From positions 1,364,001-1,428,000 of the forward strand of contig NC_043026.1 of assembly GCF_006345805.1 (NCBI RefSeq): a stretch of 64,000 bases of DNA. The letters are read 5' to 3'. The DNA comes from Octopus sinensis. Taxonomy: Eukaryota. The number at the start of each line of letters is the position of its first letter. The first letter of the stretch is position 1. Shown here piece by piece: positions 28,930-58,350 of the stretch. The notes beneath the pieces are model-generated. The model did not search any database, was not told the DNA's origin, and was given only the letters and a program-made list of their open reading frames with translations. The position numbers were made by a program, and so were the translations under genes.

Positions 28930-30102
28930 ATCACCAGAACTTGATCCCTGAAGATGGACAGAGTGACACAGCCAGCAACGAGGAGGACACCCCTCACATT
29001 CCAATCGAACCAACAACTACATACAGCCCCATTGACTGTTCCATCTCGCTCAATAATAATGATGATGATGATGGTGATGGTGATGGCAACAAGATGGAAA
29101 GTGGTGCAACAACATCTACTGATGCCTGCTTCAACATGGACTCCTTCTTTCCGGCCCCTCCCCTGCAGGACCTATACCGTTACCATATTTTCTTTTCACA
29201 CAGCCCCAACGATATTGCATGGATTGAGAGCATCGTGAAGAAGCTGGAGGAATGTCCATACAACTATAAATGTTTCTACACCAAACCAAACTCCTCTGAG
29301 ACCAGCCAAAGCAATCAAGGAAATCCCAGAATTCCTAGTGGCCTTGGCAATCCCAGCATTCCCAGCGATGGGAGTAGTCCCATCATTCCTAGAAGCCAGG
29401 GCAAATGTAGCAGTCTCAACAACGATTATGGCATTCCCAGCATTCCAAGTGGTCACCGAAATCCCAGCATTCATAGCCATAACAATTACAGCAATCCCAG
29501 CATTCCTAGCATTCTTATCAGTCGGAGCAGTCCTAGCCATGGCAACAGCATCGGTGCTGTCATCAAGAACAAGAGTAACAACAACAGCAACTGCAGCAGC
29601 AGAAGCAGCAGCACCAGAAGCATCATCATCAACAACAGCATCAATAACAACAACAACAAAAGCAATCCTAACAACACCATCAACAGTAGCAACTGCAGTG
29701 TTGGTGGTGGTAGTGATGACGATGATGATGATGATGATGGTGGTGGTGGTGAGAGTGAAGATGGTGTCAACATAAAGCAGCGCATCATCCATACAGGCAG
29801 CAAGAACAAGGGCAATTCCACCTCCAAAACAAGGAGCAGCAATGGCACAATCCAGTCGACACTGTGTGCTGCCATGCTCAGTGAGCGTGTCGTGATTGCG
29901 CTGAGCCGAAGCTATGTCCTGTCAACATGGTTTGACTTCCAGGAGATCCTACAGAACCTTACAGAATCCAGCCTCTACCAGCAGCGTCTGATCGTAATAA
30001 TGCTGGAGGACTGTGAGGTGCCAGAACCACTTCAAACCGTTGGATATCTTGACGTGCGTCAGAAGCAGTTTTACTCAACATTGACACAACTGTTACGTAG
30101 CA
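28930..30102 (+). CDS. Exon of TIR-domain / TMEM268-like membrane protein gene (TIR domain with large internal insertion); likely start ATG at 29094
   Basis: Acceptor ttctttcctccacAG (28928-29) and donor GTAAGT (30103), open frame throughout. TIR box-1-like YHIFFSHSPNDIAWIESIVKKLEE and C-terminal half AAMLSERVVIALSRSYVLSTWFDFQEIL...RLIVIMLEDCEVPEPLQTVGYLDV. AAGATGG context at 29094. Exon is phase 1 at both ends if an upstream coding exon exists. Confidence 0.85.
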
Positions 30103-30759
30103 GTAAGTTTCAAAACAATCTTCTTCTTCCTCCTCCTCCTCCTCTACCCCTTCTCATTATCATCATCAACATTACCAACATCATCCTCACACATCATTAT
30201 TATTAAAGGTGAGAGATAGGCATGATCATATTTTGCACTATTTCCAGCTCTACACCATTTCAGTTCGGACCCCACTTTACCTTTCATCCTTTTTGGGGCA
30301 ATAAAATAAAGTGCTTCTCAGTTAGTGGGGTTCAATGTAATCAATGAAATCTCTCCACACAAAATTGCTGGCTTTGTGCTTAAAACAGAAATATTTACTA
30401 AGAAAAGTAAGAGTGGAGAGGGAAGTGCTCCCTCCCACTGAATTCGTCAAATGAGGCACAAATGTTTGGATAAATGGACCAACTTGAAGCATGTGCTGTA
30501 GATTAATAAATGACAGGTGAGGATTTGTGCTGAGGTCACCTATGCCACTCATTGTTTTGGGGTTGATAAAATAAAACCAGTTGAGTACTGGAATCAATGT
30601 AATTGACTTACCCACCTTCTCTAAAATTTTGGGTTTTGAAAATTATAATAATTATGAAATTATTGTATGCAGTGCTCAGGTGCACCACAACTTGTCAAAA
30701 GTGCATATAAAGTATATGCAGTAATGTACAAATGTCTGGAAAGTGAACAGTGTATGAGT

Positions 30760-31495
30760 CAGATACATGCTTGCGTATGTATGGAGGGGAGAAAATCAGG
30801 TGTAGTGTTGGTGAATCTCAGGAAGCATGGAAGTTTTGAAGGATGCAGTGCTCTGACAACTAACAACTGATGCCGGCAGTCTGTTCCATGCTTCAGCAAC
30901 TCTTAGCGTGAAAAAGTGTTTCCGAAAGTCATGGGAGCTGTGCTGTTTTCTGACTTTGTAAACATGTCCATGGGTGTTAGACGGGTGGAGTTTGAAAAGG
31001 AGCTCAGAGTTATTGTTTGTAAGATGGTTAATAATTTTATGGGTGTCTGCCAAGTCAGCTGCCAGACATCGGAGTTTCAATGTATCCATGCCCAGGGAAG
31101 TAAGGCGTTCAGAATATGGCAAATGCCTGATGGAGGGTATTCTCTTGGTTGCACGTTGCTGAACGGCTTCCAGACGATTAATATCCTGGGCAAGATAGGA
31201 GTTCCAGACCGGTGATGCAAATTCCAGTTGAGGTCGCACCATAGCTATATAAAGCTGCAGATAAGATAGCCGGAGAGCGGCTCACAAAGGACTTGGTGAG
31301 TGATGCCAAGACACCCTCAGCCTTCTTGGCAATTTTAGCAATGTGTTTTGTCCAATGCAAATCGCTGTTGACAACAATGCCCAGAAGACTTTTTGAGATT
31401 AGTGTTGTGGAGGGAGTAAGAAGACACTGGGTTTTTCCTCCCAAAATGCATGGTGGTACATTTGTCCACAGCCAGCTTGGGTTGCCAGTCCATGT
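30760..31495 (-). mobile_element. CR1 LINE 3' fragment
   Basis: MVRPQLEFASPVWN...LEAVQQRATK...FFTLRVAEAWNRLP in ORF 30796-31242; upstream piece in ORF 31178-31444. Confidence 0.88.
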
Positions 31496-31892
31496 GTCTA
31501 AAGAAGAAAAAATTATTATTATTATTGTTGAAGTGGTGAGCTGGCAGAATCATTAGAATGCCAGGCAAAATGCTTAGCAACATTTCACTTGACTTTATTA
31601 TTATTATTGTTGTTAAGCTGACGAGCAGAGAGAATCATTAGCTTGTAGGACCAAATGCTGAATGGTATTTCTTCTGATACTTTACATTCTCAGTTCAAAC
31701 ACCACTGAGGTTAATTTTGTCTTTCATCCTTTCAGGTTTGATATGAGGGTTGGCTAAAATGTTCATAGCTGACCAAGATACTCTCATGGAATGTGATCAA
31801 ATGAGGTTTATTTTTCAGCATAAACTCTCTTGCTGCTCATGCACTTCTTCCAGCAGTGCTGAGGTGCTTGAATCCCATGGCTAAAAAAAAGT

Positions 31893-33325
31893 CATCATCA
31901 TCATCGTTTAACGTACGCTTTCCATGCTAGCATGGTTTGGACGGTTCAACTGGGGTCTGGGAAGCCAGGAGGCTGCACCAGGCCAATCAGATCTGGCGGT
32001 GTTTCTACAGCTGGATGCCCTTCCTAACGCCAACCACTCCGAGAGTGTAGTGGGTGCTTTTTATGTGCCACTGACACAGGTGCCAGACGAGGCTGGCGAA
32101 CGGCCACGTTCGGAATGTTCTCTTATGTGCCACCGGCACTGGTACCACAAACTACAAATTCCATTGATGTGGATCGATTTTGATTTGATTCTTTGATTTT
32201 CTGATTTTCACTTGCCTCAACAGGTCTTCACAAGTAGAGTTATGTGTCCCAAGAAGGAAGGTATGCACAGGTGGACTGACTATGTCCCAGGTAGGGGCCA
32301 TGGGTTATGGCCTCACTTGTCCTGCCGGGTCTTCTCACGCACAGCATACTTCCAAAGGTCTCAATCTCTAGTCATTTCCTCGGTGAGACCTAAAGAGCGA
32401 AGGTCGTTCTTCACCACCTCATCCCAGGTTTTCCTGGGTTTACCTCTTCCACAGGTTCCCTCAACCGCTAGGGTGTGGCACTTTTTCACACAACTATCTT
32501 CATCCATTCTTACTACGTGTCCATACCAGCATAGACGTCTCTCTTGCACACCACATCTGATGCTTCTTAGGTTCAACTTTTCTCTCAAGGCACTTACACT
32601 CTGTCGAGTATGAACACTGATATTACACATCCATCAGAGCATACTGGCTTCGTTTCTTGCAAGCTTACGCATATCCTCATCAGTCACAGCCCATGTTTCA
32701 CTGTTCGTACACATGAAGGCTGTTCGTACACATGCATCATACAGTCTGCCTTTTACTCTGAGCGAGAGGCCTTTTGTCACCAGCAGAGGTAAGAGCTCTC
32801 TGAACTTTGCCCAGGCTATTCTTACTCTAGCAGTTACACTTTCGGCACACCCACCCCCACTACTGACTTGATCACCTAGGTAATAGAAACTATCAACTAT
32901 TTCTAGTTTTTCTCCCTGGAATGTGGCGGAAGACAGTCTCTGCGCATTTTCAGTGTTTATTGCACCAGAACATCTGCCACATACAAAAACCATCTTCCTA
33001 ATTAGCCTTCCTTTGACATTGCTGCACCTCTTATGTGTCCATAGCTTACACTTGGTGCATCTTATAGAGTTCCTACCTACGCCTTTTCTACAGATCGAGC
33101 AGGGCCATCTACCTGAAGGCGTTTGAGATTTATCTACCTTCCTACTTTTTAGGACTTTGGTTTTAGCTAGATTGACTCTAAGGCCCTTCGATTCTAATCC
33201 TTGCTTCCACACCTGAAACTTCTCCTCCAGTTCTGATAGTGATTCAGCAATTAGAGCAAGGTCATCAGCATAGAGGAGCTCCCAGGGGCATCCTGTCTTG
33301 AATTCCTCCATTATTGCCTGGAGGC
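31893..33325 (-). mobile_element. RTE-clade LINE 3' part with PHD-like finger inside RT
   Basis: ORF 32634-33311 has LLYADDLAL, CSIC..CTKC..H..C..CGRC and FYYLGD; ORF 32361-32630 has RRLCWYGHV..GRGKPRKTW; (GAT)n tail. Confidence 0.92.
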
Positions 33326-33329
33326 AATA

Positions 33330-57640: not shown

Positions 57641-57650
57641 ATTAAACCAC

Positions 57651-57723
57651 TGGTTCCGCTGGGGATCAAACCCAGGGCCTCTCGCGTGTGAAGCAAGTGT
57701 GATAACCACTACACTACGGAACC
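57651..57723 (-). tRNA. tRNA-Val(CAC), possibly pseudogene (T-loop TTT instead of TTC)
   Basis: Minus strand GGTTCCGTAGTGTAGTGGTTATCACACTTGCTTCACACGCGAGAGGCCCTGGGTTTGATCCCCAGCGGAACCA, 73 nt. 7-bp acceptor stem GGTTCCG/CGGAACC, T stem CTGGG/CCCAG, anticodon CAC at 57688-57690. Confidence 0.9.
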
Positions 57724-57916
57724 AAATATATTTACTGAGACCTCTTGAATTTATTAGATTTTTTTCCTAAAAGAATACATATGTTGAGATACTCTAGATT
57801 TAATTTTATTCGAAGTGGACCCTATATATATAACCCTTGGTTGTTCAAGGAGCATACATTTAATTATGTATGGGGTTTCTTCCTCCATGTCACCTTAAGC
57901 ACCATACATAGCTTAA

Positions 57917-58109
57917 GGTGACATAACATGCTTCAAAAGTTATAAGCTTTACATTTCACTTTTGTTCCAAGTCAGATGCTGGTGATGTGTTGCTAGTAGT
58001 TCACACAATGTGTGTGAAGTGAGGAAATTTGTGATCAGGAAGTGAGTGATAAGAAAAAAAAAATACAAAGAATGTAAATCTTATAACTTTTGAAGCATGT
58101 TACATCACC
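57917..58109. mobile_element. Small MITE (~30-bp TIRs) just upstream of the TM2 exon
   Basis: ggtga..taacatgcttcaaaagttataag versus its reverse complement at 58080-58109; adjacent perfect 14-bp hairpin at 57887-57924. Confidence 0.55.
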
Positions 58110-58252
58110 CAATGAGGCTTCCTGCACTGTGCATTGCACCTGATGTCATTGCATCGTCCCCCACCCAATAGTGAAGAAGGGGCATAAAATAATAGTGATA
58201 ATTGAAACCATCTTTGCATTGTGCTTTCCCTGTTCTTATGTCTATTTTTCAG

Positions 58253-58350
58253 GTGCCTTACCGATACGCCTTGCCGTTTTCTTGTTCCCCCTTCTGTTGC
58301 TGATGGCTGGATATGCCTTACGGAGAATGCAGAAGCAGAATTGTGCAACG
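58253..58350 (+). CDS. Exon encoding predicted TM helix 2: (S)ALPIRLAVFLFPLLLLMAGYALRRMQKQNCAT
   Basis: Acceptor tctatttttcAG, donor GTTAGT at 58351. Phase 1 to phase 0; hydrophobic run followed by basic RRMQKQ (positive-inside). No stop codon, so the gene continues downstream. Confidence 0.8.

Follow-up and report, generated by a model that had tools for sequence, protein, structure and literature searches.

A 64,000-nucleotide (nt) window of Octopus sinensis DNA (NC_043026.1, positions 1,364,001-1,428,000, forward strand; all positions below use window numbering) holds five consecutive internal exons of one gene, the orthologue of the Octopus bimaculoides proteins XP_052833621.1 and XP_052833622.1, in which a TIR domain is followed by a two-helix transmembrane (TM) module resembling TMEM268. 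With isoform X1 (XP_052833621.1, 759 amino acids (aa); P0064) as the tblastn query, residues 28-411 aligned to 28920-30104 at 89% identity and residues 433-475 to 48487-48615 at 98%, followed by residues 474-534 at 52432-52609, essentially identical within the exon, and residues 532-567 at 58249-58356, where the exon itself is identical. Within their bounds, the exons starting at 48488, 52432 and 58253 are 98-100% identical to the O. bimaculoides protein. Exon order and a 190-aa insert in the TIR domain are shared by the two species, and the differences in the TIR exon are substitutions and five indels, all of them in frame. The features of the window are collected in Table 1.

Table 1. Exons and TIR parts of the gene, followed by the transposons and the tRNA-like element found upstream of the TIR exon or in the introns.
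Feature	Position	Strand	Description
TIR exon	28930..30102	+	1173 nt, phase 1-1; internal coding exon with the entire TIR domain
Linker exon	44870..44935	+	66 nt, phase 1-1, encodes CLPRSSESISSDLSSVLSTRA; Ser-rich, predicted disordered
DUF4481-like module start exon	48488..48609	+	NLSNGQLIAT...CHGIN; predicted beta-hairpin; tblastn and mRNA blastn
TM1 exon	52432..52609	+	Two short helices and TM helix 1; tblastn and blastn
TM2 exon	58253..58350	+	Loop end, TM helix 2, basic flank RRMQKQNCAT; the gene runs on past the window
TIR N-terminal part	29172..29279	+	Box 1 YRYHIFFSHS, alphaA, betaB ...YNYKCFY; alignment to the family and TLR1/TLR10
TIR insert	29280..29849	+	190-aa Ser/Asn/Gly/Ile/Pro-rich low complexity at the BB-loop position
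TIR C-terminal part	29850..30101	+	alphaB-alphaE; TIR_2 positions 51-121; W-F-D-F-Q-E at 29928-29945
LINE-type retrotransposon copy	10063-12603	-	Upstream of the TIR exon
LINE-type retrotransposon copy	13368-15953	+	Upstream of the TIR exon
Intron transposon remnant	46020-46460	+	piggyBac-type, DDE_Tnp_1_7 4.6e-17
Intron transposon remnant	54947-55690	-	mariner-type, Transposase_1 4.6e-21
Intron transposon remnant	32634-33311	-	Reverse-transcriptase tail and PHD finger
tRNA-Val(CAC)-like gene	57650-57724	-	Last intron; Rfam tRNA 61.7 bits; ARAGORN agrees

An earlier note on this stretch had joined four exons with AG/GT bounds (29094-30102, 48488-48609, 52432-52609 and 58253-58350) into one 469-aa frame, and both tblastn and cuttlefish mRNA agree with them. 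The four exons are genuine, but a fifth was missed and the gene continues beyond 58350. The missing exon lies within the proposed junction 30102/48488, where both RefSeq isoforms and the cuttlefish mRNA include a 66-nt exon bounded by tttag/AT...CAA/gtaagt with the product (N)CLPRSSESISSDLSSVLSTRA; because this exon is in phase 1-1, skipping it stays in frame and the four-exon model still read through. It first surfaced in a peptide scan and then in tblastn, with 21 of 21 residues matching an octopus protein fragment (P0001) and XP_052833621.1, and a metaclust protein has it; P0001 runs from the end of the TIR through this exon into the two that follow. The proposed start at ATG 29094 is internal to the TIR exon, because the orthologues carry a separate first coding exon (MQDIWVSS...: MQDIWVSSMFKSLG.../MQEILVSSMLKRLW...) and the frame is open upstream to the acceptor at 28930 (cag/ATCACC); with that start and the exon count wrong, the TIR does not lie at the N-terminus of the protein. 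A cuttlefish genomic contig (L001) conserves the acceptor together with the codons after it (HQNLIP...). A six-frame search of the window found neither the first coding exon nor any exon past 58350, and a 7-of-14 match at 9868 was rejected as chance. The last codons, about 194 of them, are not in the window, and in O. bimaculoides the gene is about 199 kb long.

Transcript evidence comes from the cuttlefish orthologue (P0073, 563 aa), whose 90% cluster includes Acanthosepion pharaonis CAE1299280.1: in 102 blocks of the Logan collection its coding sequence lies on uninterrupted contigs of 2.6-2.7 kb, which represent assembled mRNA. In blastn against the window these contigs followed the five exons collinearly and hit no other coding sequence, matching the 66-nt exon over 44884-44935 at 83% identity. 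The TIR and TM exons are separated by introns of 3.5-14.8 kb full of transposons, and an older O. bimaculoides annotation divided the gene, with UniProt A0A0L8HWK1 being a 162-aa C-terminal fragment; both facts fit two different genes fused only by prediction. Against this, the assembled cuttlefish contigs, from more than 100 runs, hold TIR and module in a single open reading frame (ORF), and at least 12 species from four phyla share this order of parts. The collinearity of the cuttlefish mRNA with the five exons therefore rules out separate genes for practical purposes, and we consider an artefactual fusion extremely improbable.

A phmmer search with P0001 against 1.84e9 representative sequences returned 62 matches, about a dozen of which extend over the TIR as well as the module; these come from Octopus, Argonauta, Argopecten, Mytilus, Saccostrea, Babylonia, Lineus, Capitella and Branchiostoma; the Sepia member joined through a profile search, and Haliotis and Candidula gave partial matches only. 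The octopus fragment reached amphioxus across both parts (E 5e-6 to 3.5e-4). A 1182-aa repeat protein (P0045) was discarded as spurious, its match extending over only about 30 residues. A hidden Markov model (HMM) built from the post-TIR region of cephalopods alone recovered Babylonia (5e-59), Saccostrea (9e-55), Lineus (4e-54) and Mytilus (1.5e-52), and Capitella at 6e-3 across its full length, with E-values computed for Z = 1.8e9 sequences. The earlier note had suspected a molluscan architecture and proposed looking for a TIR with two TM helices in other lophotrochozoans. Orthologues proved widespread: the architecture occurs in cephalopods, bivalves and gastropods, but also in a nemertean (Lineus), an annelid (Capitella) and amphioxus. 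Judged from these alignments, the proteins make up an ancient bilaterian family whose parts keep one order: short N-terminal region, TIR, Ser-rich linker and TMEM268-like module.

The combination of TIR and DUF4481 is already visible in databases, since precomputed Pfam annotation shows TIR and PF14800 together in amphioxus and Capitella proteins, and for the sister species RefSeq already has the gene as a prediction, wrongly named. Automatic names are misleading across the family, including 'probable serine/threonine-protein kinase pats1' in O. bimaculoides, 'TLR2' in Branchiostoma lanceolatum and 'MyD88-like' for a Branchiostoma floridae fragment. Pfam found no kinase domain in the O. bimaculoides protein, and the 'pats1' name probably arises from the low-complexity insert; the present assignment corrects this name and the 'TLR2' label. 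A TIR-DUF4481 fusion was found neither described nor functionally studied in the literature searched, which did not include the main survey of invertebrate TIR families. Gerdol et al. reportedly defined 'ecTIR-DC' families in 2017; among the literature searched, none of the papers mentioning ecTIR-DC describes a TIR-TMEM268 architecture.

The TIR domain was recognised in the window protein by Pfam TIR_2 (PF13676) at 36.7 bits (7e-9; cut-off 28), rising to 44.3 bits (3e-11) once the insert was excised, and all 18 aligned family members matched a TIR profile (PF13676 TIR_2 or PF01582 TIR). By sequence the octopus TIR is similar to TLR1, TLR10 and TLR2 (E about 1e-3). In the AlphaFold2 model of the cuttlefish orthologue, block-mean predicted local distance difference test (pLDDT) scores of the TIR were 74-90 for the most part, falling to 55-60 where the BB loop sits and in one other block. 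Its best Foldseek matches were MAL, MyD88 and TLR1/10 (E 8e-5 to 4e-4, TMt 0.64-0.75), and plant, SARM1 and bacterial TIRs were far weaker, with RUN1 and SARM1 at E about 0.03 or worse.

Alignment to TLR1 and TLR10 placed the insert between betaB (...YNYKCFY) and alphaB (IQSTLCAAM...), which is the position of the BB loop. The insert is present in both Octopus sequences and is a gap in every other aligned orthologue covering the region, cuttlefish included; its DNA consists of arrays with periods of 3, 6, 9, 15, 18 and 24. Box 2 of the BB loop, RDxxPG with its conserved proline, is absent in octopus, and other molluscs have unrelated short loops there. It is kept in Branchiostoma (ERDFTPG) and in Capitella P0122 (ERDFD), and Lineus has a shortened RDFD.

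In TIRs that cleave nicotinamide adenine dinucleotide (NAD+), such as those of SARM1, plants and bacteria, the glutamate of the W-x-x-x-E motif in alphaC is catalytic. In the window protein the corresponding stretch is W-F-D-F-Q-E, with Gln aligned to the TLR1 Glu. The family alignment has Gln at this W+4 position in octopus, cuttlefish, Argonauta, scallop, oyster and abalone (Haliotis), Arg in mussel, Asp in Capitella, and Glu in Babylonia, Lineus and Branchiostoma; molluscs hold Glu or Asp one residue further on, at W+5. These residues bear on whether the protein could be a membrane-anchored, NAD+-consuming effector of SARM1-like or bacterial-like type that is activated by clustering at the membrane, as the earlier note had allowed in suggesting an assay of NAD+ depletion. 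NADase activity is common among TIRs that do not belong to the TLR pathway, and the Glu at W+4 in Branchiostoma, Lineus and Babylonia, like the acidic W+5 residue of molluscs, would suit such an activity. Yet Gln occupies the aligned position in most of the molluscs listed and Arg does so in mussel, the TIR is nearest to MyD88, MAL and TLR1/10 by both sequence and fold, and the BB loop, which shapes NADase active sites, is replaced by the insert. We therefore consider an NAD+-consuming effector very unlikely, and a scaffold or regulator is favoured over an NAD-cleaving effector in octopus because the Glu is replaced by Gln, the BB loop is lost and the nearest TIRs are of scaffold type.

Downstream of the TIR come the Ser-rich linker, about 70 residues (NLSNGQ...WQFTMK), a 24-aa helix, a 9-residue loop (DAPKSSALP), a 19-aa helix and basic RRMQK. 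TM1 (PVVIIFILSIIWIVSFLLVIFLLI; 52522-52593) begins 71 residues after NLSNGQ, in an exon where the 19-residue Kyte-Doolittle mean reaches 3.3, and TM2 (IRLAVFLFPLLLLMAGYAL) is encoded at 58264-58320. The earlier note's arrangement of a TIR ahead of a TM hairpin with a basic flank is thus borne out by the TIR_2 match, the two hydrophobic segments, the short loop and RRMQK. Below-cut-off Pfam matches to RNF180_C, DUF4199, Claudin_2 and RseC fall on the TM helices and were set aside as matches of hydrophobic composition.

AlphaFold2 gave overall pLDDT values of 72.6 for the cuttlefish model and 78.2 for the Argonauta model (pTM 0.69), with the module at 80-97 in both and the linker below 50 in both. 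The predicted order is a beta-hairpin (strands 261-271 and 277-280 in the cuttlefish orthologue), short helices, TM1 and TM2, after which TM2 leads through a helix of about 50 residues to a second beta-hairpin and a helical domain. Among the matches listed by Foldseek searches of the PDB with the two models, only TIRs exceeded 0.4 probability, and everything else, the DUF4481 part included, stayed at or below 0.21; the models thus suggest that DUF4481 is a confidently predicted fold without a solved relative. The linker motif (L/I)PRSS(E/D)S(I/F/V)SS(D/E)(L/M)S is conserved in molluscs that keep the region, and an S-D-S-F-S core recurs in amphioxus; the linker could be a phosphorylation-regulated hinge. 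Compared by eye, it fits neither a pLxIS nor a DSGxxS motif.

In the C-terminal domain, outside the window, C612, H679, C685, C687 and E691 (O. bimaculoides numbering) are kept in 18-19 of 19 members, forming a signature Cys...His-x5-Cys-Leu-Cys-Gln-x2-Glu that runs from octopus to amphioxus. This conservation suggests that the Cys/His cluster is a putative structural zinc or other metal site within DUF4481. Isoforms X1 and X2 of O. bimaculoides differ by a 48-aa exon (IALGML...DISECV; XP_052833621.1 residues 566-613) comprising the post-TM beta-hairpin and Cys612, and a Mytilus isoform X2 likewise lacks it. The pattern suggests regulated alternative splicing, which would drop one ligand of the putative cluster.

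The affiliation of the post-TIR part was assessed with PF14800 (DUF4481; curated cut-off 25 bits), which was matched by 13 of the 18 aligned members at E<=0.01. Scores reached 79.2 bits in Capitella (4e-22), 60.1 in Branchiostoma (3e-16), 26.5 in Saccostrea and 25.0 in Mytilus, and Argonauta scored 13.7. The resemblance to TMEM268 proposed in the earlier note therefore stands for the family, with hits of up to 79 bits, but the octopus protein itself falls below threshold; the window covers only the first 40% or so of the module (133 of about 327 residues). The ERF4/GOLGA7-like fold that the note offered as an alternative was dropped, as Pfam Erf4 matched neither the window protein nor 10 orthologues even at E<=1-10, and no such chain was among the Foldseek PDB matches listed for the two confident models. 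Through its orthologues, the post-TIR part is assigned on profile evidence to the TMEM268/DUF4481 family. In human TMEM268, DUF4481 covers residues 38-328 with TM helices at 104-126 and 130-152 (PMC6748091), and the layout is shared: about 60-65 residues, two adjacent TM helices and then about 180 aa of cytosolic C-terminal domain. A TIR, however, could not fit in the human protein (C9orf91), whose 342 aa include DUF4481 from residue 38 onwards. Vertebrate TMEM268 binds integrin beta4 (ITGB4) and CD11b and shields them from degradation, through its TM and C-terminal part, as established in human and mouse only (PMC6748091, PMC11169502).

With moderate confidence, we interpret the octopus protein as a membrane-anchored TIR-TMEM268 protein that acts as an adaptor or regulator of Toll-type signalling through TIR contacts and not through NAD+ cleavage. 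Both ends would be cytosolic, and the TM hairpin would tether the TIR to the cytosolic face of the membrane; the TIR would act by TIR-TIR or other protein contacts. If the analogy with vertebrate TMEM268 holds, the DUF4481 module would determine where the protein localises and may recruit membrane partners. An immune role of the octopus protein is plausible.

Among known systems, the adaptors MAL/TIRAP, TRAM and MyD88 offer the same concept of a cytosolic TIR kept at the membrane, where it bridges or regulates the TIRs of receptors, and the TIR fold is nearest to MAL and MyD88. MAL anchors by a motif that binds phosphatidylinositol 4,5-bisphosphate and TRAM by myristoylation. The octopus-family anchor is instead a TM hairpin integral to the membrane and embedded in a conserved module of 300 aa, and a death domain is absent. 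TLRs and IL-1 receptors share the TIR sequence similarity noted for TLR1, TLR10 and TLR2, but in these receptors a signal peptide and an ectodomain are followed by a single TM helix and, at the C-terminus, the TIR, whereas the octopus TIR precedes the TM helices. Pfam matched no leucine-rich-repeat or immunoglobulin ectodomain in the window protein or its orthologues, and the predicted extracytoplasmic loop is only 9 residues long. A close counterpart is amphioxus 'TIRB' (Branchiostoma belcheri A0A0A0UEG1) with its paralogues, which show the same TIR and DUF4481 in precomputed annotation (PF01582/PF13676 and PF14800). Identity to octopus is about 20%, and the several amphioxus paralogues differ in that they have kept a canonical BB loop (ERDFxPG) and the glutamate of WCxxE; no published function of amphioxus TIRB was found in the literature searched.

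The loss of box 2 (RDxxPG) in all mollusc members and the 190 low-complexity residues in Octopus also fit a decoy or negative regulator, in which a degenerate molluscan TIR, lacking the BB-loop proline and the Glu, would be unable to nucleate assemblies of MyD88 type and would sequester TIR adaptors or receptors at the membrane and damp signalling. The name 'TIRB', under which the amphioxus member was deposited, points the same way, as the similarly named orphan TIR adaptors bbtTIRA and bbtTIRC of amphioxus were reported to be inhibitory (PMC6043800). However, any homology of TIRA and TIRC to the present family beyond the TIR is putative, and the amphioxus, nemertean and annelid members retain a canonical box 2. 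We regard a damping role as possible but doubtful.

The module is the larger part of the protein and the better conserved across the family, and vertebrate TMEM268 stabilises ITGB4 and CD11b (PMC6748091, PMC11169502), which together would suit a trafficking or stability factor of TMEM268 type for adhesion receptors such as integrins, with the TIR as an extra interaction surface and no dedicated Toll role. Integrin binding by invertebrate members is, however, an analogy only, and in lineages from amphioxus to molluscs the TIR has stayed beside the module, its core motifs conserved, which argues that the TIR is functionally required. A pure trafficking role appears unlikely to us.

Several points weigh against the proposed Toll-type adaptor or regulator. 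We infer its topology, localisation, partners and immune role entirely from sequence and predicted structure, and the transcript support comes from cuttlefish and not from the window's own species. The 570-nt insert is putative in the mature mRNA, and its in-frame indels could merely reflect arrays of trinucleotide type. The Glu at W+5, kept in molluscs, could substitute for the catalytic residue if the alignment were shifted by one, and several non-mollusc members retain both Glu and the RDxxPG box, so that catalysis or canonical signalling may operate elsewhere in the family. PF14800 gave no match in the window protein or in the full-length O. bimaculoides and Sepia proteins at E cut-offs of 10, 1 and 0.01, respectively, and cephalopod membership in DUF4481 would follow by transitive homology, through a strong link from cephalopods to the orthologues that pass. 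The link to vertebrate TMEM268 is drawn through the Pfam profile and the published human layout and not through direct sequence comparison: two word-index profile searches, one with the post-TIR region of molluscs, nemertean, annelid and amphioxus (A2) and one with amphioxus and Capitella (A5), recovered no vertebrate TMEM268 and reached cephalopods, Branchiostoma and Capitella only.

TIR adaptors are usually soluble or tethered by lipids, whereas here the TIR forms part of a two-pass integral membrane protein, an arrangement maintained from amphioxus to cephalopods. Such a fusion links the poorly understood TMEM268/DUF4481 module, which affects sepsis outcome in mice via CD11b, to TIR biology, and offers a concrete hypothesis on what TMEM268 did ancestrally as well as a new candidate node of lophotrochozoan innate immunity. 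More speculatively, an ancestral bilaterian TIR-TMEM268 fusion might have coupled Toll-type signalling to an integrin-turnover module, with vertebrate TMEM268, which CD11b already ties to anti-infectious immunity, as its TIR-less descendant, DUF4481 as a fold not solved before and perhaps stabilised by a Cys-His-Cys-Cys zinc site, and the molluscan TIR remodelled, through loss of the BB loop, the change of Glu to Gln and the Octopus insert, into a non-canonical regulator; we offer this scenario only tentatively.

Around the gene, one of the two long interspersed nuclear element (LINE) copies upstream of the TIR exon holds an uninterrupted 846-aa ORF (RVT_1 1.6e-27), and the other is broken into several ORFs (RVT_1 2.7e-12). 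In the last intron, a repeat of about 340 nt (57300-57642) adjoins the tRNA-Val-like gene and has at least eight other copies in the window, for example at 44086-44424 and 62436-62716; the tRNA-Val-like gene may be the head of a tRNA-derived short interspersed nuclear element and not a working tRNA gene. Finally, a long imperfect microsatellite of (TGTATG/TGTGTA) type occupies 16900-18040 and produces spurious ORFs of 140-400 aa in several frames of both strands ('YVCM...', 'HTYI...').

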